From positions 2,852,001 to 2,916,000 of the forward strand of contig CATNEN010000003.1 of NCBI GenBank assembly GCA_950097015.1: a stretch of DNA of 64,000 bases, given 5' to 3'. This document shows, piece after piece, positions 1 to 22,611 of this stretch. The notes under the pieces were generated by a model. That model saw only the letters and a program-made list of their open reading frames with translations, was not told the origin of the DNA and did no database searches. The stretch is from Macrostomum hystrix. Lineage: Eukaryota > Animalia > Platyhelminthes. The translations under genes were made by a program, and so were the position numbers. Every line of letters starts with the position of its first letter. The stretch's first letter is position 1.

Positions 1-3000
1 GTGCGCATCATAGTACGCAGGGGTCGCAACTCGTACAGAGGAAGCGTTCGCTACGGAGTCAGCACTCGCAACTATGGACGCTGGGGTCTGAGCTACACCT
101 TCGCTGGCCTTGGTGGAGGCGGCTCAGGCAGACCGCGTCCAAGACCGCAGCCGAGACCGCAGCCGAGACCACGTCCGAGTCATGGAGGTGAGTGCTGATG
201 CTGCTGGCCTTGCGCTTCTAAACTGTGATTCCCGTGCAGTGTGTCAAATATTAGTTAACGACTAAACTGGCCTGTAAATGCGAGCCGCAGTGAAAAGCTT
301 TTTCAGTTATAATATTCGAGAAAATTCGCGTTTCTAAAGCGTCATCTTTTTATTTTGATTCGCAATTCGATAGCTTGCCAGCGCGTCTCGTCGGTGAATG
401 CCTACCTGAGGGCGTCGAACGTCGGCAAGTGCTACGAGTTCCGAGTCACTGGAGTTCAAGGCGGCGTGGTGTGGGGCACTGACGTGTACACTTCGGACTC
501 GAACTTTGGCTCGGCAGCAGTGCACACGGGTCTAATCAGAGCCGGAGAGACTCGCTACGTGCGCATCATAGTACGCAGGGGTCGCAACTCGTACAGAGGA
601 AGCGTTCGCTACGGAGTCAGCACTCGCAACTATGGACGCTGGGGTCTGAGCTACACCTTCGCTGGCCTTGGTGGAGGCGGCTCAGGCAGACCGCGTCCAA
701 GACCGCAGCCGAGACCGCAGCCGAGACCACGTCCGAGTCATGGAGGTGAGTGCTGATGCTGCTGGCCTTGCGCTTCTAAACTGTGATTCCCGTGCAGTGT
801 GTCAAATATTAGTTAACGACTAAACTGGCCTGTAAAGGCGAGCCGCAGTGAAAAGCATTCTTCAGTTATAAGTATTCGAGAAAATTCGCGTTTCTAAAGC
901 GTCATCTTTTTATTTTGATTCGCAATTCGATAGCTTGCCAGCGCGTCTCGTCGGTGAATGCCTACCTGAGGGCGTCGAACGTCGGCAAGTGCTACGAGTT
1001 CCGAGTCACTGGAGTTCAAGGCGGCGTGGTGTGGGGCACTGACGTGTACACTTCGGACTCGAACTTTGGCTCGGCAGCAGTGCACACGGGTCTAATCAGA
1101 GCCGGAGAGACTCGCTACGTGCGCATCATAGTACGCAGGGGTCGCAACTCGTACAGAGGAAGCGTTCGCTACGGAGTCAGCACTCGCAACTATGGACGCT
1201 GGGGTCTGAGCTACACCTTCGCTGGCCTTGGTGGAGGCGGCTCAGGCAGACCGCGTCCAAGACCGCAGCCGAGACCGCAGCCGAGACCACGTCCGAGTCA
1301 TGGAGGTGAGTGCTGATGCTGCTGGCCTTGCGCTTCTAAACTGTGATTCCCGTGCAGTGTGTCAAATATTAGTTAACGACTAAACTGGCCTGTAAAGGCG
1401 AGCCGCAGTGAAAAGCTTTTTCAGTTATAATATTCGAGAAAATTCGCGTTTCTAAAGCGTCATCTTTTTATTTTGATTCGCAATTCGATAGCTTGCCAGC
1501 GCGTCTCGTCGGTGAATGCCTACCTGAGGGCGTCGAACGTCGGCAAGTGCTACGAGTTCCGAGTCACTGGAGTTCAAGGCGGCGTGGTGTGGGGCACTGA
1601 CGTGTACACTTCGGACTCGAACTTTGGCTCGGCAGCAGTGCACACGGGTCTAATCAGAGCCGGAGAGACTCGCTACGTGCGCATCATAGTACGCAGGGGT
1701 CGCAACTCGTACAGAGGAAGCGTTCGCTACGGAGTCAGCACTCGCAACTATGGACGCTGGGGTCTGAGCTACACCTTCGCTGGCCTTGGTGGAGGCGGCT
1801 CAGGCAGACCGCGTCCAAGACCGCAGCCGAGACCGCAGCCGAGACCACGTCCGAGTCATGGAGGTGAGTGCTGATGCTGCTGGCCTTGCGCTTCTAAACT
1901 GTGATTCCCGTGCAGTGTGTCAAATATTAGTTAACGACTAAACTGGCCTGTAAAGGCGAGCCGCAGTGAAAAGCTTTTTCAGTTATAATATTCGAGAAAA
2001 TTCGCGTTTCTAAAGCGTCATCTTTTTATTTTGATTCGCAATTCGATAGCTTGCCAGCGCGTCTCGTCGGTGAATGCCTACCTGAGGGCGTCGAACGTCG
2101 GCAAGTGCTACGAGTTCCGAGTCACTGGAGTTCAAGGCGGCGTGGTGTGGGGCACTGACGTGTACACTTCGGACTCGAACTTTGGCTCGGCAGCAGTGCA
2201 CACGGGTCTAATCAGAGCCGGAGAGACTCGCTACGTGCGCATCATAGTACGCAGGGGTCGCAACTCGTACAGAGGAAGCGTTCGCTACGGAGTCAGCACT
2301 CGCAACTATGGACGCTGGGGTCTGAGCTACACCTTCGCTGGCCTTGGTGGAGGCGGCTCAGGCAGACCGCGTCCAAGACCGCAGCCGAGACCGCAGCCGA
2401 GACCACGTCCGAGTCATGGAGGTGAGTGCTGATGCTGCTGGCCTTGCGCTTCTAAACTGTGATTCCCGTGCAGTGTGTCAAATATTAGTTAACGACTAAA
2501 CTGGCCTGTAAATGCGAGCCGCAGTGAAAAGCTTTTTCAGTTATAATATTCGAGAAAATTCGCGTTTCTAAAGCGTCATCTTTTTATTTTGATTCGCAAT
2601 TCGATAGCTTGCCAGCGCGTCTCGTCGGTGAATGCCTACCTGAGGGCGTCGAACGTCGGCAAGTGCTACGAGTTCCGAGTCACTGGAGTTCAAGGCGGCG
2701 TGGTGTGGGGCACTGACGTGTACACTTCGGACTCGAACTTTGGCTCGGCAGCAGTGCACACGGGTCTAATCAGAGCCGGAGAGACTCGCTACGTGCGCAT
2801 CATAGTACGCAGGGGTCGCAACTCGTACAGAGGAAGCGTTCGCTACGGAGTCAGCACTCGCAACTATGGACGCTGGGGTCTGAGCTACACCTTCGCTGGC
2901 CTTGGTGGAGGCGGCTCAGGCAGACCGCGTCCAAGACCGCAGCCGAGACCGCAGCCGAGACCACGTCCGAGTCATGGAGGTGAGTGCTGATGCTGCTGGC

Positions 3001-6000
3001 CTTGCGCTTCTAAACTGTGATTCCCGTGCAGTGTGTCAAATATTAGTTAACGACTAAACTGGCCTGTAAAGGCGAGCCGCAGTGAAAAGCTTTTTCAGTT
3101 ATAATATTCGAGAAAATTCGCGTTTCTAAAGCGTCATCTTTTTATTTTGATTCGCAATTCGATAGCTTGCCAGCGCGTCTCGTCGGTGAATGCCTACCTG
3201 AGGGCGTCGAACGTCGGCAAGTGCTACGAGTTCCGAGTCACTGGAGTTCAAGGCGGCGTGGTGTGGGGCACTGACGTGTACACTTCGGACTCGAACTTTG
3301 GCTCGGCAGCAGTGCACACGGGTCTAATCAGAGCCGGAGAGACTCGCTACGTGCGCATCATAGTACGCAGGGGTCGCAACTCGTACAGAGGAAGCGTTCG
3401 CTACGGAGTCAGCACTCGCAACTATGGACGCTGGGGTCTGAGCTACACCTTCGCTGGCCTTGGTGGAGGCGGCTCAGGCAGACCGCGTCCAAGACCGCAG
3501 CCGAGACCGCAGCCGAGACCACGTCCGAGTCATGGAGGTGAGTGCTGATGCTGCTGGCCTTGCGCTTCTAAACTGTGATTCCCGTGCAGTGTGTCAAATA
3601 TTAGTTAACGACTAAACTGGCCTGTAAAGGCGAGCCGCAGTGAAAAGCTTTTTCAGTTATAATATTCGAGAAAATTCGCGTTTCTAAAGCGTCATCTTTT
3701 TATTTTGATTCGCAATTCGATAGCTTGCCAGCGCGTCTCGTCGGTGAATGCCTACCTGAGGGCGTCGAACGTCGGCAAGTGCTACGAGTTCCGAGTCACT
3801 GGAGTTCAAGGCGGCGTGGTGTGGGGCACTGACGTGTACACTTCGGACTCGAACTTTGGCTCGGCAGCAGTGCACACGGGTCTAATCAGAGCCGGAGAGA
3901 CTCGCTACGTGCGCATCATAGTACGCAGGGGTCGCAACTCGTACAGAGGAAGCGTTCGCTACGGAGTCAGCACTCGCAACTATGGACGCTGGGGTCTGAG
4001 CTACACCTTCGCTGGCCTTGGTGGAGGCGGCTCAGGCAGACCGCGTCCAAGACCGCAGCCGAGACCGCAGCCGAGACCACGTCCGAGTCATGGAGGTGAG
4101 TGCTGATGCTGCTGGCCTTGCGCTTCTAAACTGTGATTCCCGTGCAGTGTGTCAAATATTAGTTAACGACTAAACTGGCCTGTAAAGGCGAGCCGCAGTG
4201 AAAAGCTTTTTCAGTTATAATATTCGAGAAAATTCGCGTTTCTAAAGCGTCATCTTTTTATTTTGATTCGCAATTCGATAGCTTGCCAGCGCGTCTCGTC
4301 GGTGAATGCCTACCTGAGGGCGTCGAACGTCGGCAAGTGCTACGAGTTCCGAGTCACTGGAGTTCAAGGCGGCGTGGTGTGGGGCACTGACGTGTACACT
4401 TCGGACTCGAACTTTGGCTCGGCAGCAGTGCACACGGGTCTAATCAGAGCCGGAGAGACTCGCTACGTGCGCATCATAGTACGCAGGGGTCGCAACTCGT
4501 ACAGAGGAAGCGTTCGCTACGGAGTCAGCACTCGCAACTATGGACGCTGGGGTCTGAGCTACACCTTCGCTGGCCTTGGTGGAGGCGGCTCAGGCAGACC
4601 GCGTCCAAGACCGCAGCCGAGACCGCAGCCGAGACCACGTCCGAGTCATGGAGGTGAGTGCTGATGCTGCTGGCCTTGCGCTTCTAAACTGTGATTCCCG
4701 TGCAGTGTGTCAAATATTAGTTAACGACTAAACTGGCCTGTAAAGGCGAGCCGCAGTGAAAAGCTTTTTCAGTTATAATATTCGAGAAAATTCGCGTTTC
4801 TAAAGCGTCATCTTTTTATTTTGATTCGCAATTCGATAGCTTGCCAGCGCGTCTCGTCGGTGAATGCCTACCTGAGGGCGTCGAACGTCGGCAAGTGCTA
4901 CGAGTTCCGAGTCACTGGAGTTCAAGGCGGCGTGGTGTGGGGCACTGACGTGTACACTTCGGACTCGAACTTTGGCTCGGCAGCAGTGCACACGGGTCTA
5001 ATCAGAGCCGGAGAGACTCGCTACGTGCGCATCATAGTACGCAGGGGTCGCAACTCGTACAGAGGAAGCGTTCGCTACGGAGTCAGCACTCGCAACTATG
5101 GACGCTGGGGTCTGAGCTACACCTTCGCTGGCCTTGGTGGAGGCGGCTCAGGCAGACCGCGTCCAAGACCGCAGCCGAGACCGCAGCCGAGACCACGTCC
5201 GAGTCATGGAGGTGAGTGCTGATGCTGCTGGCCTTGCGCTTCTAAACTGTGATTCCCGTGCAGTGTGTCAAATATAAGTTAACGACTAAACTGGCCTGTA
5301 AAGGCGAGCCGCAGTGAAAAGCTTTTTCAGTTATAATATTCGAGAAAATTCGCGTTTCCTAAAGCGTCATCTTTTTATTTTGATTCGCAATTCGATAGCT
5401 TGCCAGCGCGTCTCGTCGGTGAATGCCTACCTGAGGGCGTCGAACGTCGGCAAGTGCTACGAGTTCCGAGTCACTGGAGTTCAAGGCGGCGTGGTGTGGG
5501 GCACTGACGTGTACACTTCGGACTCGAACTTTGGCTCGGCAGCAGTGCACACGGGTCTAATCAGAGCCGGAGAGACTCGCTACGTGCGCATCATAGTACG
5601 CAGGGGTCGCAACTCGTACAGAGGAAGCGTTCGCTACGGAGTCAGCACTCGCAACTATGGACGCTGGGGTCTGAGCTACACCTTCGCTGGCCTTGGTGGA
5701 GGCGGCTCAGGCAGACCGCGTCCAAGACCGCAGCCGAGACCGCAGCCGAGACCACGTCCGAGTCATGGAGGTGAGTGCTGATACTGCTGGCCTTGCGCTT
5801 CTAAACTGTGATTCCCGTGCAGTGTGTCAAATATAAGTTAACGACTAAACTGGCCTGTAAAGGCGAGCCGCAGTGAAAAGCTTTTTCAGTTATAATATTC
5901 GAGAAAATTCGCGTTTCTAAAGCGTCATCTTTTTATTTTGATTCGCAATTCGATAGCTTGCCAGCGCGTCTCGTCGGTGAATGCCTACCTGAGGGCGTCG

Positions 6001-9000
6001 AACGTCGGCAAGTGCTACGAGTTCCGAGTCACTGGAGTTCAAGGCGGCGTGGTGTGGGGCACTGACGTGTACACTTCGGACTCGAACTTTGGCTCGGCAG
6101 CAGTGCACACGGGTCTAATCAGAGCCGGAGAGACTCGCTACGTGCGCATCATAGTACGCAGGGGTCGCAACTCGTACAGAGGAAGCGTTCGCTACGGAGT
6201 CAGCACTCGCAACTATGGACGCTGGGGTCTGAGCTACACCTTCGCTGGCCTTGGTGGAGGCGGCTCAGGCAGACCGCGTCCAAGACCGCAGCCGAGACCG
6301 CAGCCGAGACCACGTCCGAGTCATGGAGGTGAGTGCTGATGCTGCTGGCCTTGCGCTTCTAAACTGTGATTCCCGTGCAGTGTGTCAAATATAAGTTAAC
6401 GACTAAACTGGCCTGTAAAGGCGAGCCGCAGTGAAAAGCTTTTTCAGTTATAATATTCGAGAAAATTCGCGTTTCTAAAGCGTCATCTTTTTATTTTGAT
6501 TCGCAATTCGATAGCTTGCCAGCGCGTCTCGTCGGTGAATGCCTACCTGAGGGCGTCGAACGTCGGCAAGTGCTACGAGTTCCGAGTCACTGGAGTTCAA
6601 GGCGGCGTGGTGTGGGGCACTGACGTGTACACTTCGGACTCGAACTTTGGCTCGGCAGCAGTGCACACGGGTCTAATCAGAGCCGGAGAGACTCGCTACG
6701 TGCGCATCATAGTACGCAGGGGTCGCAACTCGTACAGAGGAAGCGTTCGCTACGGAGTCAGCACTCGCAACTATGGACGCTGGGGTCTGAGCTACACCTT
6801 CGCTGGCCTTGGTGGAGGCGGCTCAGGCAGACCGCGTCCAAGACCGCAGCCGAGACCGCAGCCGAGACCACGTCCGAGTCATGGAGGTGAGTGCTGATGC
6901 TGCTGGCCTTGCGCTTCTAAACTGTGATTCCCGTGCAGTGTGTCAAATATAAGTTAACGACTAAACTGGCATGTAAAGGCGAGCCGCAGTGAAAAGCTTT
7001 TTCAGTTATAATATTCGAGAAAATTCGCGTTTCTAAAGCGTCATCTTTTTATTTTGATTCGCAATTCGATAGCTTGCCAGCGCGTCTCGTCGGTGAATGC
7101 CTACCTGAGGGCGTCGAACGTCGGCAAGTGCTACGAGTTCCGAGTCACTGGAGTTCAAGGCGGCGTGGTGTGGGGCACTGACGTGTACACTTCGGACTCG
7201 AACTTTGGCTCGGCAGCAGTGCACACGGGTCTAATCAGAGCCGGAGAGACTCGCTACGTGCGCATCATAGTACGCAGGGGTCGCAACTCGTACAGAGGAA
7301 GCGTTCGCTACGGAGTCAGCACTCGCAACTATGGACGCTGGGGTCTGAGCTACACCTTCGCTGGCCTTGGTGGAGGCGGCTCAGGCAGACCGCGTCCAAG
7401 ACCGCAGCCGAGACCGCAGCCGAGACCACGTCCGAGTCATGGAGGTGAGTGCTGATACTGCTGGCCTTGCGCTTCTAAACTGTGATTCCCGTGCAGTGTG
7501 TCAAATATAAGTTAACGACTAAACTGGCCTGTAAAGGCGAGCCGCAGTGAAAAGCTTTTTCAGTTATAATATTCGAGAAAATTCGCGTTTCTAAAGCGTC
7601 ATCTTTTTATTTTGATTCGCAATTCGATAGCTTGCCAGCGCGTCTCGTCGGTGAATGCCTACCTGAGGGCGTCGAACGTCGGCAAGTGCTACGAGTTCCG
7701 AGTCACTGGAGTTCAAGGCGGCGTGGTGTGGGGCACTGACGTGTACACTTCGGACTCGAACTTTGGCTCGGCAGCAGTGCACACGGGTCTAATCAGAGCC
7801 GGAGAGACTCGCTACGTGCGCATCATAGTACGCAGGGGTCGCAACTCGTACAGAGGAAGCGTTCGCTACGGAGTCAGCACTCGCAACTATGGACGCTGGG
7901 GTCTGAGCTACACCTTCGCTGGCCTCGGTGGAGGCGGCTCAGGCAGACCGCGTCCAAGACCGCAGCCGAGACCGCAGCCGAGACCACGTCCGAGTCATGG
8001 AGGTGAGTGCTGATACTGCTGGCCTTGCGCTTCTAAACTGTGATTCCCGTGCAGTGTGTCAAATATTAGTTAACGACTAAAGTGGCATGTGAAAGCGAGC
8101 CGCAGTGAAAAGCTTTTCAGTTATAAGTATTCGAGAAAATTCGCGTTTCTAAAGCGTCATCTTTTTATTTTGATTCGCAATTCGATAGCTTGCCAGCGCG
8201 TCTCGTCGGTGAATGCCTACCTGAGGGCGTCGAACGTCGGCAAGTGCTACGAGTTCCGAGTCACTGGAGTTCAAGGCGGCGTGGTGTGGGGCACTGACGT
8301 GTACACTTCGGACTCGAACTTTGGCTCGGCAGCAGTGCACACGGGTCTAATCAGAGCCGGAGAGACTCGCTACGTGCGCATCATAGTACGCAGGGGTCGC
8401 AACTCGTACAGAGGAAGCGTTCGCTACGGAGTCAGCACTCGCAACTATGGACGCTGGGGTCTGAGCTACACCTTCGCTGGCCTCGGTGGAGGCGGCTCAG
8501 GCAGACCGCGTCCAAGACCGCAGCCGAGACCGCAGCCGAGACCACGTCCGAGTCATGGAGGTGAGTGCTGATGCTGCTGGCCTTGCGCTTCTAAACTGTG
8601 ATTCCCGTGCAGTGTGTCAAATATTAGTTAACGACTAAAGTGGCATGTGAAAGGCGAGCCGCAGTGAAAAGCTTTTTCAGTTATAATATTCGAGAAAATT
8701 CGCGTTTCCAAAGCGTCATCTTTTTATTTTGATTCGCAATTCGATAGCTTGCCAGCGCGTCTCGTCGGTGAATGCCTACCTGAGGGCGTCGAACGTCGGC
8801 AAGTGCTACGAGTTCCGAGTCACTGGAGTTCAAGGCGGCGTGGTGTGGGGCACTGACGTGTACACTTCGGACTCGAACTTTGGCTCGGCAGCAGTGCACA
8901 CGGGTCTAATCAGAGCCGGAGAGACTCGCTACGTGCGCATCATAGTACGCAGGGGTCGCAACTCGTACAGAGGAAGCGTTCGCTACGGAGTCAGCACTCG

Positions 9001-12000
9001 CAACTATGGACGCTGGGGTCTGAGCTACACCTTCGCTGGCCTTGGTGGAGGCGGCTCAGGCAGACCGCGTCCAAGACCGCAGCCGAGACCGCAGCCGAGA
9101 CCACGTCCGAGTCATGGAGGTGAGTGCTGATGCTGCTGGCCTTGCGCTTCTAAACTGTGATTCCCGTGCAGTGTGTCAAATATAAGTTAACGACTAAACT
9201 GGCCTGTAAAGGCGAGCCGCAGTGAAAAGCTTTTTCAGTTATAATATTCGAGAAAATTCGCGTTTCTAAAGCGTCATCTTTTTATTTTGATTCGCAATTC
9301 GATAGCTTGCCAGCGCGTCTCGTCGGTGAATGCCTACCTGAGGGCGTCGAACGTCGGCAAGTGCTACGAGTTCCGAGTCACTGGAGTTCAAGGCGGCGTG
9401 GTGTGGGGCACTGACGTGTACACTTCGGACTCGAACTTTGGCTCGGCAGCAGTGCACACGGGTCTAATCAGAGCCGGAGAGACTCGCTACGTGCGCATCA
9501 TAGTACGCAGGGGTCGCAACTCGTACAGAGGAAGCGTTCGCTACGGAGTCAGCACTCGCAACTATGGACGCTGGGGTCTGAGCTACACCTTCGCTGGCCT
9601 CGGTGGAGGCGGCTCAGGCAGACCGCGTCCAAGACCGCAGCCGAGACCGCAGCCGAGACCACGTCCGAGTCATGGAGGTGAGTGCTGATGCTGCTGGCCT
9701 TGCGCTTCTAAACTGTGATTCCCGTGCAGTGTGTCAAATATTAGTTAACGACTAAAGTGGCATGTGAAAGCGAGCCGCAGTGAAAAGCATTCTTCAGTTA
9801 TAAGTATTCGAGAAAATTCGCGTTTCTAAAGCGTCATCTTTTTATTTTGATTCGCAATTCGATAGCTTGCCAGCGCGTCTCGTCGGTGAATGCCTACCTG
9901 AGGGCGTCGAACGTCGGCAAGTGCTACGAGTTCCGAGTCACTGGAGTTCAAGGCGGCGTGGTGTGGGGCACTGACGTGTACACTTCGGACTCGAACTTTG
10001 GCTCGGCAGCAGTGCACACGGGTCTAATCAGAGCCGGAGAGACTCGCTACGTGCGCATCATAGTACGCAGGGGTCGCAACTCGTACAGAGGAAGCGTTCG
10101 CTACGGAGTCAGCACTCGCAACTATGGACGCTGGGGTCTGAGCTACACCTTCGCTGGCCTCGGTGGAGGCGGCTCAGGCAGACCGCGTCCAAGACCGCAG
10201 CCGAGACCGCAGCCGAGACCACGTCCGAGTCATGGAGGTGAGTGCTGATGCTGCTGGCCTTGCGCTTCTAAACTGTGATTCCCGTGCAGTGTGTCAAATA
10301 TTAGTTAACGACTAAAGTGGCATGTGAAAGCGAGCCGCAGTGAAAAGCTTTTTCAGTTATAATATTCGAGAAAATTCGCGTTTCCAAAGCGTCATCTTTT
10401 TATTTTGATTCGCAATTCGATAGCTTGCCAGCGCGTCTCGTCGGTGAATGCCTACCTGAGGGCGTCGAACGTCGGCAAGTGCTACGAGTTCCGAGTCACT
10501 GGAGTTCAAGGCGGCGTGGTGTGGGGCACTGACGTGTACACTTCGGACTCGAACTTTGGCTCGGCAGCAGTGCACACGGGTCTAATCAGAGCCGGAGAGA
10601 CTCGCTACGTGCGCATCATAGTACGCAGGGGTCGCAACTCGTACAGAGGAAGCGTTCGCTACGGAGTCAGCACTCGCAACTATGGACGCTGGGGTCTGAG
10701 CTACACCTTCGCTGGCCTTGGTGGAGGCGGCTCAGGCAGACCGCGTCCAAGACCGCAGCCGAGACCGCAGCCGAGACCACGTCCGAGTCATGGAGGTGAG
10801 TGCTGATGCTGCTGGCCTTGCGCTTCTAAACTGTGATTCCCGTGCAGTGTGTCAAATATTAGTTAACGACTAAACTGGCCTGTAAAGGCGAGCCGCAGTG
10901 AAAAGCTTTTTCAGTTATAATATTCGAGAAAATTCGCGTTTCTAAAGCGTCATCTTTTTATTTTGATTCGCAATTCGATAGCTTGCCAGCGCGTCTCGTC
11001 GGTGAATGCCTACCTGAGGGCGTCGAACGTCGGCAAGTGCTACGAGTTCCGAGTCACTGGAGTTCAAGGCGGCGTGGTGTGGGGCACTGACGTGTACACT
11101 TCGGACTCGAACTTTGGCTCGGCAGCAGTGCACACGGGTCTAATCAGAGCCGGAGAGACTCGCTACGTGCGCATCATAGTACGCAGGGGTCGCAACTCGT
11201 ACAGAGGAAGCGTTCGCTACGGAGTCAGCACTCGCAACTATGGACGCTGGGGTCTGAGCTACACCTTCGCTGGCCTCGGTGGAGGCGGCTCAGGCAGACC
11301 GCGTCCAAGACCGCAGCCGAGACCGCAGCCGAGACCAAGTCCGAGTCATGGAGGTGAGTGCTGATGCTGCTGGCCTTGCGCTTCTAAACTGTGATTCCCG
11401 TGCAGTGTGTCAAATATTAGTTAACGACTAAAGTGGCATGTGAAAGCGAGCCGCAGTGAAAAGCATTCTTCGTTAAAGTATTCGAGAAAATTCGCGTTTC
11501 TAAAGCGTCATCTTTTTATTTTGATTCGCAATTCGATAGCTTGCCAGCGCGTCTCGTCGGTGAATGCCTACCTGAGGGCGTCGAACGTCGGCAAGTGCTA
11601 CGAGTTCCGAGTCACTGGAGTTCAAGGCGGCGTGGTGTGGGGCACTGACGTGTACACTTCGGACTCGAACTTTGGCTCGGCAGCAGTGCACACGGGTCTA
11701 ATCAGAGCCGGAGAGACTCGCTACGTGCGCATCATAGTACGCAGGGGTCGCAACTCGTACAGAGGAAGCGTTCGCTACGGAGTCAGCACTCGCAACTATG
11801 GACGCTGGGGTCTGAGCTACACCTTCGCTGGCCTTGGTGGAGGCGGCTCAGGCAGACCGCGTCCAAGACCGCAGCCGAGACCGCAGCCGAGACCACGTCC
11901 GAGTCATGGAGGTGAGTGCTGATGCTGCTGGCCTTGCGCTTCTAAACTGTGATTCCCGTGCAGTGTGTCAAATATTAGTTAACGACTAAAGTGGCATGTG

Positions 12001-15000
12001 AAAGCGAGCCGCAGTGAAAAGCATTCTTCGTTAAAGTATTCGAGAAAATTCGCGTTTCTAAAGCGTCATCTTTTTATTTTGATTCGCAATTCGATAGCTT
12101 GCCAGCGCGTCTCGTCGGTGAATGCCTACCTGAGGGCGTCGAACGTCGGCAAGTGCTACGAGTTCCGAGTCACTGGAGTTCAAGGCGGCGTGGTGTGGGG
12201 CACTGACGTGTACACTTCGGACTCGAACTTTGGCTCGGCAGCAGTGCACACGGGTCTAATCAGAGCCGGAGAGACTCGCTACGTGCGCATCATAGTACGC
12301 AGGGGTCGCAACTCGTACAGAGGAAGCGTTCGCTACGGAGTCAGCACTCGCAACTATGGACGCTGGGGTCTGAGCTACACCTTCGCTGGCCTCGGTGGAG
12401 GCGGCTCAGGCAGACCGCGTCCAAGACCGCAGCCGAGACCGCAGCCGAGACCACGTCCGAGTCATGGAGGTGAGTGCTGATGCTGCTGGCCTTGCGCTTC
12501 TAAACTGTGATTCCCGTGCAGTGTGTCAAATATTAGTTAATGACTAAAGTGGCATGTGAAAGCGAGCCGCAGTGAAAAGCTTTTTCAGTTATAATATTCG
12601 AGAAAATTCGCGTTTCCAAAGCGTCATCTTTTTATTTTGATTCGCAATTCGATAGCTTGCCAGCGCGTCTCGTCGGTGAATGCCTACCTGAGGGCGTCGA
12701 ACGTCGGCAAGTGCTACGAGTTCCGAGTCACTGGAGTTCAAGGCGGCGTGGTGTGGGGCACTGACGTGTACACTTCGGACTCGAACTTTGGCTCGGCAGC
12801 AGTGCACACGGGTCTAATCAGAGCCGGAGAGACTCGCTACGTGCGCATCATAGTACGCAGGGGTCGCAACTCGTACAGAGGAAGCGTTCGCTACGGAGTC
12901 AGCACTCGCAACTATGGACGCTGGGGTCTGAGCTACACCTTCGCTGGCCTTGGTGGAGGCGGCTCAGGCAGACCGCGTCCAAGACCGCAGCCGAGACCGC
13001 AGCCGAGACCACGTCCGAGTCATGGAGGTGAGTGCTGATGCTGCTGGCCTTGCGCTTCTAAACTGTGATTCCCGTGCAGTGTGTCAAATATTAGTTAACG
13101 ACTAAACTGGCCTGTAAAGGCGAGCCGCAGTGAAAAGCTTTTTCAGTTATAATATTCGAGAAAATTCGCGTTTCTAAAGCGTCATCTTTTTATTTTGATT
13201 CGCAATTCGATAGCTTGCCAGCGCGTCTCGTCGGTGAATGCCTACCTGAGGGCGTCGAACGTCGGCAAGTGCTACGAGTTCCGAGTCACTGGAGTTCAAG
13301 GCGGCGTGGTGTGGGGCACTGACGTGTACACTTCGGACTCGAACTTTGGCTCGGCAGCAGTGCACACGGGTCTAATCAGAGCCGGAGAGACTCGCTACGT
13401 GCGCATCATAGTACGCAGGGGTCGCAACTCGTACAGAGGAAGCGTTCGCTACGGAGTCAGCACTCGCAACTATGGACGCTGGGGTCTGAGCTACACCTTC
13501 GCTGGCCTCGGTGGAGGCGGCTCAGGCAGACCGCGTCCAAGACCGCAGCCGAGACCGCAGCCGAGACCACGTCCGAGTCATGGAGGTGAGTGCTGATGCT
13601 GCTGGCCTTGCGCTTCTAAACTGTGATTCCCGTGCAATGTGTCAAATATTAGTTAACGACTAAACTGGCCTGTAAAGGCGAGCCGCAGTGAAAAGCTTTT
13701 TCAGTTATAATATTCGAGAAAATTTGCGTTTCCAAAGCGTCATCTTTTTATTTTGATTCGCAATTCGATAGCTTGCCAGCGCGTCTCGTCGGTGAATGCC
13801 TACCTGAGGGCGTCGAACGTCGGCAAGTGCTACGAGTTCCGAGTCACTGGAGTTCAAGGCGGCGTGGTGTGGGGCACTGACGTGTACACTTCGGACTCGA
13901 ACTTTGGCTCGGCAGCAGTGCACACGGGTCTAATCAGAGCCGGAGAGACTCGCTACGTGCGCATCATAGTACGCAGGGGTCGCAACTCGTACAGAGGAAG
14001 CGTTCGCTACGGAGTCAGCACTCGCAACTATGGACGCTGGGGTCTGAGCTACACCTTCGCTGGCCTTGGTGGAGGCGGCTCAGGCAGACCGCGTCCAAGA
14101 CCGCAGCCGAGACCGCAGCCGAGACCACGTCCGAGTCATGGAGGTGAGTGCTGATACTGCTGGCCTTGCGCTTCTAAACTGTGATTCCCGTGCAGTGTGT
14201 CAAATATTAGTTAACGACTAAACTGGCCTGTAAAGGCGAGCCGCAGTGAAAAGCTTTTTCAGTTATAATATTCGAGAAAATTCGCGTTTCTAAAGCGTCA
14301 TCTTTTTATTTTGATTCGCAATTCGATAGCTTGCCAGCGCGTCTCGTCGGTGAATGCCTACCTGAGGGCGTCGAACGTCGGCAAGTGCTACGAGTTCCGA
14401 GTCACTGGAGTTCAAGGCGGCGTGGTGTGGGGCACTGACGTGTACACTTCGGACTCGAACTTTGGCTCGGCAGCAGTGCACACGGGTCTAATCAGAGCCG
14501 GAGAGACTCGCTACGTGCGCATCATAGTACGCAGGGGTCGCAACTCGTACAGAGGAAGCGTTCGCTACGGAGTCAGCACTCGCAACTATGGACGCTGGGG
14601 TCTGAGCTACACCTTCGCTGGCCTTGGTGGAGGCGGCTCAGGCAGACCGCGTCCAAGACCGCAGCCGAGACCGCAGCCGAGACCACGTCCGAGTCATGGA
14701 GGTGAGTGCTGATACTGCTGGCCTTGCGCTTCTAAACTGTGATTCCCGTGCAGTGTGTCAAATATTAGTTAACGACTAAACTGGCCTGTAAAGGCGAGCC
14801 GCAGTGAAAAGCTTTTTCAGTTATAATATTCGAGAAAATTCGCGTTTCTAAAGCGTCATCTTTTTATTTTGATTCGCAATTCGATAGCTTGCCAGCGCGT
14901 CTCGTCGGTGAATGCCTACCTGAGGGCGTCGAACGTCGGCAAGTGCTACGAGTTCCGAGTCACTGGAGTTCAAGGCGGCGTGGTGTGGGGCACTGACGTG

Positions 15001-18000
15001 TACACTTCGGACTCGAACTTTGGCTCGGCAGCAGTGCACACGGGTCTAATCAGAGCCGGAGAGACTCGCTACGTGCGCATCATAGTACGCAGGGGTCGCA
15101 ACTCGTACAGAGGAAGCGTTCGCTACGGAGTCAGCACTCGCAACTATGGACGCTGGGGTCTGAGCTACACCTTCGCTGGCCTCGGTGGAGGCGGCTCAGG
15201 CAGACCGCGTCCAAGACCGCAGCCGAGACCGCAGCCGAGACCACGTCCGAGTCATGGAGGTGAGTGCTGATGCTGCTGGCCTTGCGCTTCTAAACTGTGA
15301 TTCCCGTGCAGTGTGTCAAATATAAGTTAACGACTAAAGTGGCATGTGAAAGCGAGCCGCAGTGAAAAGCATTCTTCGTTAAAGTATTCGAGAAAATTCG
15401 CGTTTCTAAAGCGTCATCTTTTTATTTTGATTCGCAATTCGATAGCTTGCCAGCGCGTCTCGTCGGTGAATGCCTACCTGAGGGCGTCGAACGTCGGCAA
15501 GTGCTACGAGTTCCGAGTCACTGGAGTTCAAGGCGGCGTGGTGTGGGGCACTGACGTGTACACTTCGGACTCGAACTTTGGCTCGGCAGCAGTGCACACG
15601 GGTCTAATCAGAGCCGGAGAGACTCGCTACGTGCGCATCATAGTACGCAGGGGTCGCAACTCGTACAGAGGAAGCGTTCGCTACGGAGTCAGCACTCGCA
15701 ACTATGGACGCTGGGGTCTGAGCTACACCTTCGCTGGCCTTGGTGGAGGCGGCTCAGGCAGACCGCGTCCAAGACCGCAGCCGAGACCGCAGCCGAGACC
15801 ACGTCCGAGTCATGGAGGTGAGTGCTGATACTGCTGGCCTTGCGCTTCTAAACTGTGATTCCCGTGCAGTGTGTCAAATATTAGTTAACGACTAAACTGG
15901 CCTGTAAAGGCGAGCCGCAGTGAAAAGCTTTTTCAGTTATAATATTCGAGAAAATTCGCGTTTCTAAAGCGTCATCTTTTTATTTTGATTCGCAATTCGA
16001 TAGCTTGCCAGCGCGTCTCGTCGGTGAATGCCTACCTGAGGGCGTCGAACGTCGGCAAGTGCTACGAGTTCCGAGTCACTGGAGTTCAAGGCGGCGTGGT
16101 GTGGGGCACTGACGTGTACACTTCGGACTCGAACTTTGGCTCGGCAGCAGTGCACACGGGTCTAATCAGAGCCGGAGAGACTCGCTACGTGCGCATCATA
16201 GTACGCAGGGGTCGCAACTCGTACAGAGGAAGCGTTCGCTACGGAGTCAGCACTCGCAACTATGGACGCTGGGGTCTGAGCTACACCTTCGCTGGCCTCG
16301 GTGGAGGCGGCTCAGGCAGACCGCGTCCAAGACCGCAGCCGAGACCGCAGCCGAGACCACGTCCGAGTCATGGAGGTGAGTGCTGATGCTGCTGGCCTTG
16401 CGCTTCTAAACTGTGATTCCCGTGCAGTGTGTCAAATATTAGTTAACGACTAAAGTGGCATGTGAAAGCGAGCCGCAGTGAAAAGCATTCTTCGTTAAAG
16501 TATTCGAGAAAATTCGCGTTTCTAAAGCGTCATCTTTTTATTTTGATTCGCAATTCGATAGCTTGCCAGCGCGTCTCGTCGGTGAATGCCTACCTGAGGG
16601 CGTCGAACGTCGGCAAGTGCTACGAGTTCCGAGTCACTGGAGTTCAAGGCGGCGTGGTGTGGGGCACTGACGTGTACACTTCGGACTCGAACTTTGGCTC
16701 GGCAGCAGTGCACACGGGTCTAATCAGAGCCGGAGAGACTCGCTACGTGCGCATCATAGTACGCAGGGGTCGCAACTCGTACAGAGGAAGCGTTCGCTAC
16801 GGAGTCAGCACTCGCAACTATGGACGCTGGGGTCTGAGCTACACCTTCGCTGGCCTTGGTGGAGGCGGCTCAGGCAGACCGCGTCCAAGACCGCAGCCGA
16901 GACCGCAGCCGAGACCACGTCCGAGTCATGGAGGTGAGTGCTGATGCTGCTGGCCTTGCGCTTCTAAACTGTGATTCCCGTGCAGTGTGTCAAATATTAG
17001 TTAACGACTAAAGTGGCATGTGAAAGCGAGCCGCAGTGAAAAGCATTCTTCGTTAAAGTATTCGAGAAAATTCGCGTTTCTAAAGCGTCATCTTTTTATT
17101 TTGATTCGCAATTCGATAGCTTGCCAGCGCGTCTCGTCGGTGAATGCCTACCTGAGGGCGTCGAACGTCGGCAAGTGCTACGAGTTCCGAGTCACTGGAG
17201 TTCAAGGCGGCGTGGTGTGGGGCACTGACGTGTACACTTCGGACTCGAACTTTGGCTCGGCAGCAGTGCACACGGGTCTAATCAGAGCCGGAGAGACTCG
17301 CTACGTGCGCATCATAGTACGCAGGGGTCGCAACTCGTACAGAGGAAGCGTTCGCTACGGAGTCAGCACTCGCAACTATGGACGCTGGGGTCTGAGCTAC
17401 ACCTTCGCTGGCCTCGGTGGAGGCGGCTCAGGCAGACCGCGTCCAAGACCGCAGCCGAGACCGCAGCCGAGACCACGTCCGAGTCATGGAGGTGAGTGCT
17501 GATGCTGCTGGCCTTGCGCTTCTAAACTGTGATTCCCGTGCAGTGTGTCAAATATTAGTTAACGACTAAAGTGGCATGTGAAAGCGAGCCGCAGTGAAAA
17601 GCTTTTTCAGTTATAATATTCGAGAAAATTCGCGTTTCCAAAGCGTCATCTTTTTATTTTGATTCGCAATTCGATAGCTTGCCAGCGCGTCTCGTCGGTG
17701 AATGCCTACCTGAGGGCGTCGAACGTCGGCAAGTGCTACGAGTTCCGAGTCACTGGAGTTCAAGGCGGCGTGGTGTGGGGCACTGACGTGTACACTTCGG
17801 ACTCGAACTTTGGCTCGGCAGCAGTGCACACGGGTCTAATCAGAGCCGGAGAGACTCGCTACGTGCGCATCATAGTACGCAGGGGTCGCAACTCGTACAG
17901 AGGAAGCGTTCGCTACGGAGTCAGCACTCGCAACTATGGACGCTGGGGTCTGAGCTACACCTTCGCTGGCCTTGGTGGAGGCGGCTCAGGCAGACCGCGT

Positions 18001-21000
18001 CCAAGACCGCAGCCGAGACCGCAGCCGAGACCACGTCCGAGTCATGGAGGTGAGTGCTGATGCTGCTGGCCTTGCGCTTCTAAACTGTGATTCCCGTGCA
18101 GTGTGTCAAATATTAGTTAACGACTAAACTGGCCTGTAAAGGCGAGCCGCAGTGAAAAGCTTTTTCAGTTATAATATTCGAGAAAATTCGCGTTTCTAAA
18201 GCGTCATCTTTTTATTTTGATTCGCAATTCGATAGCTTGCCAGCGCGTCTCGTCGGTGAATGCCTACCTGAGGGCGTCGAACGTCGGCAAGTGCTACGAG
18301 TTCCGAGTCACTGGAGTTCAAGGCGGCGTGGTGTGGGGCACTGACGTGTACACTTCGGACTCGAACTTTGGCTCGGCAGCAGTGCACACGGGTCTAATCA
18401 GAGCCGGAGAGACTCGCTACGTGCGCATCATAGTACGCAGGGGTCGCAACTCGTACAGAGGAAGCGTTCGCTACGGAGTCAGCACTCGCAACTATGGACG
18501 CTGGGGTCTGAGCTACACCTTCGCTGGCCTCGGTGGAGGCGGCTCAGGCAGACCGCGTCCAAGACCGCAGCCGAGACCGCAGCCGAGACCACGTCCGAGT
18601 CATGGAGGTGAGTGCTGATGCTGCTGGCCTTGCGCTTCTAAACTGTGATTCCCGTGCAATGTGTCAAATATAAGTTAACGACTAAACTGGCCTGTAAAGG
18701 CGAGCCGCAGTGAAAAGCTTTTTCAGTTATAATATTCGAGAAAATTCGCGTTTCCAAAGCGTCATCTTTTTATTTTGATTCGCAATTCGATAGCTTGCCA
18801 GCGCGTCTCGTCGGTGAATGCCTACCTGAGGGCGTCGAACGTCGGCAAGTGCTACGAGTTCCGAGTCACTGGAGTTCAAGGCGGCGTGGTGTGGGGCACT
18901 GACGTGTACACTTCGGACTCGAACTTTGGCTCGGCAGCAGTGCACACGGGTCTAATCAGAGCCGGAGAGACTCGCTACGTGCGCATCATAGTACGCAGGG
19001 GTCGCAACTCGTACAGAGGAAGCGTTCGCTACGGAGTCAGCACTCGCAACTATGGACGCTGGGGTCTGAGCTACACCTTCGCTGGCCTTGGTGGAGGCGG
19101 CTCAGGCAGACCGCGTCCAAGACCGCAGCCGAGACCGCAGCCGAGACCACGTCCGAGTCATGGAGGTGAGTGCTGATACTGCTGGCCTTGCGCTTCTAAA
19201 CTGTGATTCCCGTGCAGTGTGTCAAATATTAGTTAACGACTAAACTGGCCTGTAAAGGCGAGCCGCAGTGAAAAGCTTTTTCAGTTATAATATTCGAGAA
19301 AATTCGCGTTTCTAAAGCGTCATCTTTTTATTTTGATTCGCAATTCGATAGCTTGCCAGCGCGTCTCGTCGGTGAATGCCTACCTGAGGGCGTCGAACGT
19401 CGGCAAGTGCTACGAGTTCCGAGTCACTGGAGTTCAAGGCGGCGTGGTGTGGGGCACTGACGTGTACACTTCGGACTCGAACTTTGGCTCGGCAGCAGTG
19501 CACACGGGTCTAATCAGAGCCGGAGAGACTCGCTACGTGCGCATCATAGTACGCAGGGGTCGCAACTCGTACAGAGGAAGCGTTCGCTACGGAGTCAGCA
19601 CTCGCAACTATGGACGCTGGGGTCTGAGCTACACCTTCGCTGGCCTTGGTGGAGGCGGCTCAGGCAGACCGCGTCCAAGACCGCAGCCGAGACCGCAGCC
19701 GAGACCACGTCCGAGTCATGGAGGTGAGTGCTGATACTGCTGGCCTTGCGCTTCTAAACTGTGATTCCCGTGCAGTGTGTCAAATATTAGTTAACGACTA
19801 AACTGGCCTGTAAAGGCGAGCCGCAGTGAAAAGCTTTTTCAGTTATAATATTCGAGAAAATTCGCGTTTCTAAAGCGTCATCTTTTTATTTTGATTCGCA
19901 ATTCGATAGCTTGCCAGCGCGTCTCGTCGGTGAATGCCTACCTGAGGGCGTCGAACGTCGGCAAGTGCTACGAGTTCCGAGTCACTGGAGTTCAAGGCGG
20001 CGTGGTGTGGGGCACTGACGTGTACACTTCGGACTCGAACTTTGGCTCGGCAGCAGTGCACACGGGTCTAATCAGAGCCGGAGAGACTCGCTACGTGCGC
20101 ATCATAGTACGCAGGGGTCGCAACTCGTACAGAGGAAGCGTTCGCTACGGAGTCAGCACTCGCAACTATGGACGCTGGGGTCTGAGCTACACCTTCGCTG
20201 GCCTCGGTGGAGGCGGCTCAGGCAGACCGCGTCCAAGACCGCAGCCGAGACCGCAGCCGAGACCACGTCCGAGTCATGGAGGTGAGTGCTGATGCTGCTG
20301 GCCTTGCGCTTCTAAACTGTGATTCCCGTGCAGTGTGTCAAATATAAGTTAACGACTAAAGTGGCATGTGAAAGCGAGCCGCAGTGAAAAGCATTCTTCG
20401 TTAAAGTATTCGAGAAAATTCGCGTTTCTAAAGCGTCATCTTTTTATTTTGATTCGCAATTCGATAGCTTGCCAGCGCGTCTCGTCGGTGAATGCCTACC
20501 TGAGGGCGTCGAACGTCGGCAAGTGCTACGAGTTCCGAGTCACTGGAGTTCAAGGCGGCGTGGTGTGGGGCACTGACGTGTACACTTCGGACTCGAACTT
20601 TGGCTCGGCAGCAGTGCACACGGGTCTAATCAGAGCCGGAGAGACTCGCTACGTGCGCATCATAGTACGCAGGGGTCGCAACTCGTACAGAGGAAGCGTT
20701 CGCTACGGAGTCAGCACTCGCAACTATGGACGCTGGGGTCTGAGCTACACCTTCGCTGGCCTTGGTGTAGGCGGCTCAGGCAGACCGCGTCCAAGACCGC
20801 AGCCGAGACCGCAGCCGAGACCACGTCCGAGTCATGGAGGTGAGTGCTGATGCTGCTGGCCTTGCGCTTCTAAACTGTGATTCCCGTGCAGTGTGTCAAA
20901 TATAAGTTAACGACTAAACTGGCCTGTAAAGGCGAGCCGCAGTGAAAAGCTTTTTCAGTTATAATATTCGAGAAAATTCGCGTTTCTAAAGCGTCATCTT

Positions 21001-21535
21001 TTTATTTTGATTCGCAATTCGATAGCTTGCCAGCGCGTCTCGTCGGTGAATGCCTACCTGAGGGCGTCGAACGTCGGCAAGTGCTACGAGTTCCGAGTCA
21101 CTGGAGTTCAAGGCGGCGTGGTGTGGGGCACTGACGTGTACACTTCGGACTCGAACTTTGGCTCGGCAGCAGTGCACACGGGTCTAATCAGAGCCGGAGA
21201 GACTCGCTACGTGCGCATCATAGTACGCAGGGGTCGCAACTCGTACAGAGGAAGCGTTCGCTACGGAGTCAGCACTCGCAACTATGGACGCTGGGGTCTG
21301 AGCTACACCTTCGCTGGCCTTGGTGGAGGCGGCTCAGGCAGACCGCGTCCAAGACCGCAGCCGAGACCGCAGCCGAGACCACGTCCGAGTCATGGAGGTG
21401 AGTGCTGATGCTGCTGGCCTTGCGCTTCTAAACTGTGATTCCCGTGCAGTGTGTCAAATATTAGTTAACGACTAAACTGGCCTGTAAAGGCGAGCCGCAG
21501 TGAAAAGCTTTCTGCGTTAAAATATTCGAGAAAAG
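1..21535 (+). repeat. Tandem array of 558-bp (558-560) exon+intron units, at least 39 copies, near-identical
   Basis: ORF ends recur at 198, 756, 1316 ... 21408. Length differences between units fall only in the ~186-nt intron. Confidence 0.98.
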
Positions 21536-22611
21536 TCGTGGATCTGGAATGTCTTGTTTTATGCGGACACACTTTTTTGTACTGGTATTTTGCTTTTGCT
21601 TTAGTTGATGTTCTTCGCGTAATATTTTTTTACAATACTTTTATTCACGTTTCGTGTTGCTGACTTTATAATTATTTTTATATATTTTTGTTTGCTCATT
21701 GTAGGGCTTGGCAGGAAACCTGGCCAGAGACCCGCTAAGGGACCTGGCAAGAGACCCGGCAAGAGACCCGGCAAGAGACCAGGCATAAGACCCGGCAAGC
21801 GACCTGGCAAGAGACCAGGCAAGAAACCCGGCAAGCGACCAGGCAAGAAACCTGGCAAGAGACCAGGCAAGAAACCTGGCAAGAGACCAGGCAAGCGACC
21901 TGGCAAGAGACCAAGTAAGCGACCCGGCAAGAGACCCGGCATGCGACCTGGCAAGAGACCAGGCAAGAAACCTGGCAAGAGACCAGGCAAGAGACCCGGC
22001 AAGAGACCAGGCAAGAGACCAGGCAAGAAGCCTGGCAAGAGACCTGGCAAGAGACCAGGCAAGAAACCCGGCAAGAGACCCGGCAAGAGACCAGGCAAGA
22101 AACCTGGCAAGAGACCAGGCAAGCGACCTGGCAAGAGACCAAGTAAGCGACCCGGCAAGAGACCCGGCATGCGACCTGGCAAGAGACCAGGCAAGAAACC
22201 TGGCAAGAGACCAGGCAAGAGACCCGGCAAGAGACCAGGCAAGAGACCAGGCAAGAAACCTGGCAAGAGACCAGGCAAGAGACCCGGCAAGAGACCAGGC
22301 AGGCGACCCGGCAAGAGACCAGGCAAGCGACCCGGCAAGCGACCCGGCAAGAGACCAGGCAAGAGACCCGGCAAGAGACCAGGCAAGAAATATTTTCTGT
22401 ATTTCGTAGTTTTTTTACGCCAATGGGTATCATTTCCACATTAAATGCTTTTATTTTCAACATTACATTATCAGAAAATAAGTACATTTAAAAGTCCATT
22501 CTTAAGGCAGCGCATAATTTTGCCCCGTTCACCGTTGCAGAGCACAAGGCCAATAAGCTCATTGACGTCACTGAAGTGTCATCGTGTAACGAGGCAGCAA
22601 ACCTGTTTTAA
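1..22611 (+). CDS. Giant multi-LCCL cationic protein, 5' end outside the window. Exons: partial 1-187; 38 complete 372-nt exons (first 374-745, last 21026-21397, ~558-bp spacing); GKRP-repeat exon 21705-22382 (donor uncertain); terminal exon 22541-22611
   Basis: Each unit has a T-rich tract with acceptor ttcgatAG|CT and donor GAG|GTGAGT, both phase 1, so G+CT gives Ala and the frame continues. Motifs VWGTDVYTSDS..AAVHTGLI and YRGSVRYGVSTRNYGRW.SY.F match LCCL. The acceptors at 21704 and 22540 are also phase 1. Stop TAA at 22609-22611, AATAAA at 22656-22661. Confidence 0.88.
21705..22382 (+). CDS. Coding exon of ~55 tetrapeptide repeats GKRP/GKKP (12-bp unit), up to 226 aa
   Basis: Acceptor tttgctcattgtAG|GG in phase 1. 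Codon third positions vary (CCA/CCC/CCT, AGA/CGA) while the peptide is kept. Contains a 228-bp internal duplication (SKRP at 21914 and 22142). Confidence 0.8.
22541..22611 (+). CDS. Terminal exon (E/K)HKANKLIDVTEVSSCNEAANLF*
   Basis: Acceptor ccgttgcAG in phase 1. Frame, length and stop are conserved in the paralogous exon at 27569-27639. Confidence 0.8.

Follow-up and report, generated by a model that had tools for sequence, protein, structure and literature searches.

Our analysis indicates that the 21-kb "satellite" in this stretch of Macrostomum hystrix DNA (the window, 64,000 nucleotides) most likely forms the last two-thirds of a single 34-kb gene, which runs from C3:2,840,987 to ~2,874,680 on the + strand (~34 kb, 60 exons; C3 is the contig). 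On balance, the array probably makes up the repetitive body of one protein-coding gene, for which we infer splicing, secretion and function. One giant spliced gene had been proposed in a preliminary description of the window, and it appears to be the best reading of the sequence in view of the identical splice sites, the symmetric phase and the unique flanking exons that lie in phase. The array is larger than was then stated. Beginning at C3:2841768, 10.2 kb before the window, it holds 57 repeat exons, not only the 39 of the window. This copy number may be inexact, as it was read from a PacBio CLR/canu assembly.

Organization of the repeat array

The window holds one partial and 38 complete phase 1-1 exons of 372 nt, as previously described. 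Acceptors (AG/CTTGCCAGCG, the slash marking the exon boundary) were found 38 times and donors (CATGGAG/GTGAGT) 39 times, with a spacing of 558-560 bp, and all of the complete exons (38/38) are exactly 372 nt long. The introns, which had been put at ~186 nt, measure 186-188 nt. Since the sole open frame begins at exon offset 2, the exons are phase 1-1, and because this holds for all internal exons the frame is preserved for any number of units. Over the whole array, the acceptor contexts are identical in 57/57 units and so are the donor contexts (57/57), a pattern far beyond chance. Within a repeat exon, the LCCL domain is followed by the Gly-rich and (RP/QP)n linker. The positions of these features are collected in Table 1.

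The 133-aa ORFs of the units indeed begin and end in introns. For example, the ORF at 355-756 starts with a TTG in the intron and stops at a TGA just after the donor. These ORFs have neither an ATG nor a signal peptide. The repeat intron has no match in Rfam and its folding is no better than that of shuffled sequence (z -0.16), and an intron-hosted RNA array was rejected on these grounds.

The 14th repeat exon (C3:2849023-2849395, window -2978..-2606) is 373 nt long due to an extra A. As assembled, this base ends the frame after ~1,830 aa, at a stop located 24 codons beyond it. The 373-nt length reflects a frameshift or, alternatively, an error in the PacBio assembly.

Table 1. Features of the predicted M. 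hystrix LCCL gene. Positions are counted from the first nucleotide of the window.
Feature	Position	Strand	Description
Exon 1		+	82 nt; encodes predicted signal peptide
Exon 2		+	465 nt; older diverged LCCL domain with Tyr/Thr/His/Arg-rich linker
Repeat exons (n=57)		+	372 nt, near-identical; one LCCL domain plus Gly-rich and Pro/Arg linker each
3' part of repeat exon 19/57	1..187	+	exon start at window -184
Repeat intron	188..373	+	186 nt; GTGAGT...GATAG
38 complete phase 1-1 LCCL exons and 37 introns	374..21397	+	374-745, 934-1305, ... 21026-21397
Last intron	21398..21704	+	307 nt
Last (tail) exon	21705..22444	+	phase 1; ~53 GKRP repeats
Probable 3' UTR	22445..22680	+	
3' block resembling WSC-gene flank	22515..22700	+	

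Identity of the repeated domain

The assignment of the unit to the LCCL family, made in the preliminary description, was confirmed with Pfam PF03815 (46.9 bits for a cut-off of 22.6, E 3.2e-12), and a genome scan placed 58/58 units above the cut-off of this model. A phmmer search with the unit matched cochlin (1JBI), and its AF2 model (pLDDT 86) retrieved the same structure in Foldseek with a probability of 1.0 and a TM of 0.71 (target-normalised); LCCL-like Rxt3 chains were also among the Foldseek matches. No domain other than LCCL was found in the repeat unit, except that a weaker match to Rxt3, a related family, overlaps it.

The core motif (W/Y)G(T/S)xxY(T/S)xDSxxxxAA(V/I)HAG is present in the unit, which carries WGTDVYTSDSNFGSAAVHTG, and D41, S42, A47, A48, V49 and H50 are invariant in the LCCL alignment. 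Instead of the canonical four cysteines (two disulfides), each unit has 2 Cys, at positions 1 and 19. The Cys that precedes AAVHAG is a Gly in the unit, and positions 1-33 of the Pfam model are unaligned to it. The unit is a Cys-poor LCCL form, as in the rotifer and bacterial matches. The nearest protein matches (40-52% identity) are mixed across PVC bacteria, amoebae, rotifers and amphibians and therefore give no clear donor signal; horizontal transfer of a bacterial-type LCCL was not retained.

Protein collections searched with the repeat exon returned no spliced product, only an unspliced ORF of a related organism, and nothing was found with exon 2. The supplementary tables of the genome paper give no coordinates and no LCCL annotation.

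Sequence constraint on the exons

Variable positions are much rarer in the exons (5/372 sites) than in the introns (24/190 columns; Fisher p 1.3e-6), and nucleotide diversity is 0.0016 in exons versus 0.028 in introns, about 18-fold lower. The exon variants are 3 synonymous and 2 non-synonymous, too few for significance alone, and both variants common to several units are synonymous. As exon synonymous sites are also less variable than introns, part of this contrast may not be due to protein-level selection. Comparison of exon 2 with the repeat exon gave a dN/dS of 0.23 at a dS of 0.89. In the GKRP repeats, variation falls at the third codon position of Pro or exchanges AGA with CGA and AGA with AAA, and is mostly silent or Arg/Lys. 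The related organism shows the same exon/intron contrast: its copies differ at 1/122 exon residues versus 9/36 intron-derived residues, indels in the linker comprise complete codons, and the codons at the donor are retained.

Ends of the predicted gene and probable origin of the array

Upstream of the array, the signal-peptide exon anticipated in the preliminary description is present. It is an ATG exon that reads MKPHLSSVLFAIFVALNIAKSGNANWS; its GT donor is in phase 1, and 66 nt upstream lies a TGA in the same frame. The signal peptide, an N-terminal hydrophobic leader, was judged by eye. Exon 2 is in phase with the array. No convincing DNA homology emerged when the LCCL gene was compared with its WSC neighbour at the 5' end.

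At the other end, the frame continues in phase into the GKRP exon, as had been described; the separate terminal coding exon proposed behind it is not needed, since the GKRP exon ends in its own stop codon. The tail exon begins after ...CATTGTAG and comprises 245 codons, with 53 tetrapeptide repeats (GKRP/GKKP) followed by KYFLYFVVFLRQWVSFPH and a TAA at 22442-22444. Its 245 aa include 48 R and 62 K, for a net charge of +110. The probable 3' UTR is accompanied by ATTAAA at 22440 and AATAAA at 22656-22661. The candidate coding exon at ~22541 was rejected as unnecessary; the sole donor available to it is weak (TGG/GTATCA), and in the WSC paralogue the corresponding splice would yield a different reading. 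The 22515..22700 block, which includes TGACGTCA and AATAAA, is 75-83% identical to 27541-27717, behind the neighbouring WSC gene, and is probably a shared 3' UTR or flank, not a coding terminal exon. This adjacent paralogous-style WSC gene is itself clearly decayed. Searched against the whole genome, the GKRP tail matched no gene family; all that came up was minisatellite noise (AKYP, GAEP, PLAL and similar). The genome is rich in minisatellites, so that a 12-nt repeat behind a gene is not unusual by itself.

The repeat intron is composite, its 5' part matching the last intron and its 3' part matching intron 2. In the last intron, the first ~140 nt match the repeat intron while the remainder is unique, which locates the 3' edge of the duplicated unit there. 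The symmetric phase, the conserved splice sites and the hybrid junction intron are those of a tandem exon duplication. The repeat intron combines the downstream with the upstream intron of the ancestral gene, and the array probably grew by unequal crossing-over within introns, as indicated by the phase 1-1 of all internal exons. The gene is a very clean case of exon-plus-intron tandem amplification, of a type that standard gene finders and short-read transcriptomes would overlook or collapse.

Predicted product and alternative explanations

With all exons spliced in, the product would reach ~7,496 aa and ~0.8 MDa and carry a net charge of about +1,000, size and charge being sums over exons. 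It would form a beads-on-a-string polycation of 58 LCCL domains, one unit having a pI of 11.5 and a net charge of +16. The function that we prefer, tentatively, is that of a gland secretion, either adhesive-organ material or epidermal mucus/rhabdite material. The LCCL beads, the cationic linkers and the GKRP tail could together cross-link or bind polyanionic glycans or surfaces. This proposed polyanion binding is modelled on the KR/GRK-rich regions of flatworm ap1, whose role is also a proposed one. An adhesive or gland secretion is plausible in view of what has been published on flatworm adhesion. More speculatively, the product could be an unrecognised major material of Macrostomum gland secretions, a ~0.8-MDa chain of 58 lectin-like LCCL beads that would bind anionic glycans multivalently. 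It would then serve either as an LCCL-based third component of the temporary adhesive or as a scaffold of epidermal mucus or rhabdites, and changes in the number of exon copies would tune its length.

The same anatomical evidence would also suit a real gene with another role, an antimicrobial or microbe-trapping mucus component that would use its multivalent LCCL beads and its Pro/Arg linkers to clump bacteria, either on the epidermis or inside the gut. The pI and charge of the unit are in line with such a role, cochlin and CRISPLD2, both LCCL proteins, have been connected with the binding of bacteria or LPS, and motifs of the PRPRP type are found in Pro/Arg-rich antimicrobial peptides. However, we found no processing sites for peptide release, and the sole expression datum for a flatworm LCCL protein comes from adhesive organs. 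The sequence does not separate this role, which we consider unlikely, from an adhesive or mucus function.

Should the insertion in the 14th exon be real, the gene would be recently inactivated or truncated, yielding ~1,830 aa (15 LCCL domains) or nothing, with the 43 downstream units and the GKRP tail decaying. The 373-nt exon with its stop 24 codons past the insertion, together with the decay of the neighbouring WSC gene, agrees with this scenario, but the 43 units past the frameshift contain no further indels or stops, the variants common to several units are all synonymous, and skipping of a phase 1-1 exon would preserve the frame. Moreover, a CLR assembly in which short-read polishing cannot place reads in near-identical units can be expected to contain one stray base in 21 kb. 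We therefore regard inactivation as distinctly improbable. Still harder to accept is a non-coding satellite, or a series of independent small genes with one 133-aa ORF per unit, despite the satellite look of the 558-bp period and the ORF in each unit. These ORFs, devoid of ATG and signal peptide, are bounded by intron-like sequence, and consensus splice sites occur at phase-preserving positions in 57/57 units. The exon/intron diversity contrast, the dN/dS of 0.23 and the in-phase unique flanking exons all point to coding sequence, and the intron has neither an Rfam match nor a fold beyond shuffles (z -0.16).

If the single protein-coding gene is expressed as modelled, its product would be by far the largest known LCCL-domain protein, with 58 domains against ~12 in the biggest one predicted among 1.8 billion representative proteins, and would rank among the most highly charged natural polycations. 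Expression would also provide a tractable system for the poorly understood LCCL domain, whose binding function would be multiplied 58-fold, and one more candidate to join the few known flatworm proteins of bioadhesion and mucus, which are of interest for reversible glues.

Comparison with known systems

A limit of one or two domains per protein, which the preliminary description gave for Factor C, cochlin and CRISPLD proteins, does not hold for LCCL proteins in general, as animal proteins with 8-12 are predicted. We found 12 LCCL stretches in Lingula anatina (XP_013405792), 11 in Lissotriton helveticus (XP_078499425), 9 in Styela clava (XP_039262352) and in Rotaria socialis (CAM2730288), and 8 in Rhinatrema (XP_029474005), while PVC-group bacteria have 3-4. 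As in M. hystrix, these are LCCL chains with short Pro-rich linkers, 33-47% identical to the unit. The rotifer and bacterial proteins share its Cys-poor domain, whereas the amphibian domains keep four cysteines. The predicted proteins have at most ~12 diverged domains versus 58 near-identical ones here, about five times the largest count found elsewhere. The multi-LCCL sequences that we read are all uncharacterised predictions and lack a polycationic GKRP tail.

Within the same genus, the Macrostomum adhesive protein ap2 contains 21 x 255-aa and 25 x 221-aa tandem repeats, and two-thirds of ap1 is a Gly/Arg/Lys-rich polycation that is proposed to bind polyanions (PMC6410801; PMC8621496). Both are giant secreted proteins, as the product of the LCCL gene would be. 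The LCCL gene has a similar build, with ~7,496 aa predicted, an N-terminal leader, 57 repeats and a Gly/Arg/Lys-rich polycationic tail. The domains reported are CTL, vWD, C8, TIL and EGF for ap1, and TIL, vWD, C8, LDL and TSP-1 for ap2, with LCCL in neither, and short-read transcriptomes collapse both (PMC6410801; PMC8621496). The exons of the LCCL gene encode only the signal peptide, LCCL and GKRP. As the core domains of ap1 and ap2 are absent, it is not an orthologue of either.

In the proseriate Minona ileanae, the LCCL transcript Mile-ao1 is specific to adhesive organs (Pjeta et al., 2019; PMC6745481). It has one LCCL domain, as read from a short-read transcript, and its RNAi gave no adhesion phenotype; a separate GRK-rich adhesive protein, Mile-ap3, belongs to the same organ (PMC6745481). 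Mile-ao1 and the M. hystrix gene are both flatworm LCCL genes, likened here by description. By this analogy, the RNAi result would count against an adhesive reading of the LCCL gene.

Cochlin, Limulus factor C and CRISPLD1/2 share the fold (1JBI, TM 0.71) and the core DS..AAVHAG. They differ from the M. hystrix gene in having 1-2 four-Cys LCCL domains alongside vWA, CAP or protease modules, and no tandem amplification.

The LPA kringle IV-2 array is a gene region expanded by tandem exon-intron duplication. Like such arrays, the LCCL array consists of a phase-symmetric, homogenised exon-plus-intron unit with a probably variable copy number, but its unit is a one-exon segment of 558 bp, present in 57 copies and encoding a different domain.

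Anatomy of the LCCL array

We analyzed a canu assembly of PacBio CLR reads, polished with Arrow and Pilon (Macrostomum hystrix Machtx_v2; Wiberg et al. 2023, PMC10468722). The window, C3:2852001-2916000, contains 38 acceptors (AG/CTTGCCAGCG; slash, splice site) and 39 donors (CATGGAG/GTGAGT), spaced by 558-560 bp. Each of the 38 complete exons measures exactly 372 nt, and intron length is 186-188 nt. The frame is open solely at exon offset 2, so that every repeat exon is phase 1-1, and the codon split at the repeat exon junction (G/CT) encodes alanine. Acceptors, donors, lengths and frame thus agree with the unit proposed in the preliminary description, a 372-nt phase 1-1 exon and an intron of about 186 nt. 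As also stated there, the 133-aa ORFs begin and end in introns: they start at an intronic TTG and stop just beyond the donor.

Examination of 100 kb upstream of the window showed that the array extends there, to a total of 57 repeat exons as assembled. The acceptor context TCGCAATTCGATAG/ and the donor context GAG/GTGAGTGCTGAT are identical in all 57. Exon 2 has an LCCL domain with 73% identity to the repeat unit and a linker rich in Tyr, Thr, His and Arg. A search for a signal-peptide exon upstream had been suggested, and the 82-nt exon 1 is the candidate; judged by eye, its leader is a putative signal peptide. Its ATG is preceded by an in-frame TGA at a distance of 66 nt and by a CATAAATA box at about 115 nt. 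Two minisatellites, one with units of ~20 nt (GATTCTATCTGCGGATCTTGC...) and the other of 19-22 nt (CCCAAAGCTACGGTGGCGC...), lie directly upstream of the promoter region.

At the 3' end, the reading frame passes in phase 1 into the GKRP exon, as had been claimed, but this exon has its own TAA and the separate terminal exon with AATAAA is not supported. An ATTAAA overlaps the stop, and an AATAAA is found 212 nt downstream of it. Summed exon by exon, with exons searched and folded singly and not as a joined coding sequence, the exons total 22,491 nt, 7,496 codons and ~816 kDa, with a net charge of ~+1,040 (+16 per repeat unit, +110 for the GKRP tail).

The 14th repeat exon, outside the window, carries an extra A that would end translation after ~1,830 aa. 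An assembly error is the more likely explanation, since short-read polishing of a CLR assembly cannot resolve near-identical units and this is one stray base in 21 kb. Skipping this phase 1-1 exon would keep the frame.

Coordinates of the LCCL gene and surrounding features (C3 and C1, contigs of the assembly; bare numbers, window positions; negative, upstream of the window)
Feature	Position	Description
Upstream minisatellites	C3:2838560-2840270	L012 (upstream C3 sequence):6560-7020 and 7780-8270
Exon 1	C3:2840987-2841068	82 nt; encodes MKPHLSSVLFAIFVALNIAKSGNANWS; GT donor in phase 1
Exon 2	C3:2841173-2841637	465 nt; phase 1-1; LCCL domain
First repeat exon	from C3:2841768	window -10232
14th repeat exon	C3:2849023-2849395	extra A
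Last intron	21398-21704	307 nt; after last repeat exon (end 21397)
Tail exon	from 21705	phase 1; 53 GKRP/GKKP tetrapeptides, KYFLYFVVFLRQWVSFPH, TAA at 22442
Palindrome	22563-22580; 27588-27605	TGACGTCA, perfect, CRE-like
Inverted repeat	23154-23269; 24132-24247	perfect, 116 nt; spacer 862 nt
Neighbouring gene	25884-27120	to 27720 with 3' block; signal-peptide exon MLHLSRLLLLGVCFGFLLVTVNANF, donor phase 1; WSC-type domain
Minisatellite	36170-36976	16 nt x 52
60-nt repeat	38432-38587	x 2.6, 100% identity
Minisatellite	43485-45700	12 nt x 183
Minisatellite	49055-52057	21 nt x 143
Minisatellite	53028-54409	17 nt x 81
Other LCCL locus	C1:4976328-4977323	L023 (C1 locus):3328-4323; minus strand

LCCL identity and coding constraint

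The repeat unit is an LCCL domain. The HMM check suggested earlier gave 46.9 bits against Pfam PF03815 (cut-off 22.6), and in a genome scan 58/58 units exceed the cut-off. A phmmer search with the unit retrieves cochlin 1JBI. One exon was modelled with AlphaFold (pLDDT 86 in the domain, <50 in the linker), and the model matches 1JBI with a TM of 0.71; LCCL-like Rxt3 chains match too. Each unit has two cysteines versus the canonical four, a Cys-poor form common to rotifer and bacterial matches. Outside the array, the genome has a single LCCL locus, an intronless 331-aa ORF in which two LCCL-like domains exceed the Pfam cut-off and a third was recognised by eye. It has no obvious signal peptide and is strongly diverged from the array unit.

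Our evidence for coding is sequence-based. Among the 57 units, 5/372 exon columns are variable against 24/190 intron columns (Fisher p 1.3e-6), with a nucleotide diversity of 0.0016 for exons versus 0.028 for introns. When shared variants only are counted, the exon, two-thirds of the unit, holds no more than 2 of 20 (binomial p 2e-7). The two exon variants common to several units are both synonymous, and each of the two missense changes, both in the linker, occurs in one unit only; the overall synonymous to non-synonymous count of 3:2 is too small for significance alone. Synonymous exon sites are likewise less variable than introns. Window exons are constant in length while intron length varies, and exon 2 compared with the repeat exon gives a dN/dS of 0.23 (dS 0.89). 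In the GKRP repeats, variability is highest at the third position of the Pro codon, at AGA/CGA (silent) and at AGA/AAA (Arg/Lys), a pattern that fits exactly the frame carried on from the LCCL exons.

A related organism, represented solely by four unspliced ORFs of 158-169 aa on 0.6-1.2 kb contigs from Logan and ENA, has a unit 86-87% identical to that of M. hystrix. Indels in its linker span whole codons, it has the M. hystrix donor codons (G-E-C), and its copies differ at 1/122 exon residues versus 9/36 intron-derived residues (p 6e-6).

Origin of the array and its 3' neighbour

The repeat intron matches the last ~55 nt of intron 2 at its 3' end and, in its 5' part, the ~140 nt with which the last intron begins. 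It is thus a hybrid, formed through unequal exchange between the introns on either side of one ancestral exon. An assembler loop as the origin of the array is made less likely by the irregular order of 24 intron haplotypes among 56 introns, and by the exon variant T296C, which tends to alternate between adjacent units in the 3' half. Both patterns argue for a real stepwise amplification, perhaps partly as two-unit blocks.

The block at 22515-22700 shares 75-83% identity with 27541-27717, behind the neighbouring gene. A coding terminal exon in this block would need a weak donor (TGG/GTATCA), and the matching splice in the neighbour would read differently; we therefore treat the block as a probable shared 3' UTR or flank. 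The CRE-like palindrome is kept in both copies. The neighbour's WSC domain is broken by one frameshift and in-frame stops, and its short decayed basic tail ends in KYFYLL before the stop; the LCCL gene tail likewise ends KYF.... The neighbour resembles a tandem paralogue, now dead, built on the same gene chassis.

Just 3' of the LCCL gene, the 116-nt inverted repeat is either a foldback/MITE-like element or a palindrome created by the assembly. Minisatellites (periods 12-34 nt) are very dense across 24539-62000 and generate long spurious ORFs on both strands (e.g. 48949-52125, 1,058 aa). Within the 60-nt repeat, GGGAATCGAACCCC is similar to a tRNA T-arm; ARAGORN found no tRNA gene in 22600-64000.

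Possible function and comparison with known proteins

Gene anatomy, LCCL fold, extreme charge and sequence constraint are established features of the array, which is probably the gene of a giant secreted protein. Splicing of the pre-mRNA would give an mRNA of ~22.5 kb, and the protein would enter the secretory pathway. The multivalent polycationic bead chain may then bind and cross-link anionic glycans or surfaces. Given such a gene, an adhesive or mucus material is a tentative proposal, and a microbe-trapping role is unlikely.

HMMER with one unit retrieved 3,815 matches from 1.84 billion representative proteins. The most LCCL-rich (Lingula, Lissotriton, Styela, Rotaria, Rhinatrema) have 8-12 stretches, and many proteins with 3-4 domains come from PVC-group bacteria and amoebae. 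The earlier view that LCCL proteins carry only one or two domains is not supported, as predicted proteins reach 12. Poly-LCCL proteins already exist, all uncharacterised; none of the 3,815 matches approaches 58 domains. Full-text literature searches returned no description of such a poly-LCCL protein or of any Macrostomum LCCL gene.

In Minona ileanae, the LCCL transcript Mile-ao1 is adhesive-organ specific, with no phenotype upon RNAi, and Mile-ap3 is a GRK-rich adhesive component (Pjeta et al. 2019, PMC6745481). Among Macrostomum adhesive proteins, Mlig-ap2 carries tandem repeats of 21 x 255 aa and 25 x 221 aa, and two-thirds of Mlig-ap1 is a Gly/Arg/Lys polycation interacting with polyanions; attachment is blocked by heparin, and short-read transcriptomes collapse both proteins (PMC6410801; PMC8621496). 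The LCCL gene lacks the CTL, vWD, C8, TIL, EGF and TSP-1 domains of ap1/ap2 and is therefore not an orthologue of either, but it has a construction principle in common with them.
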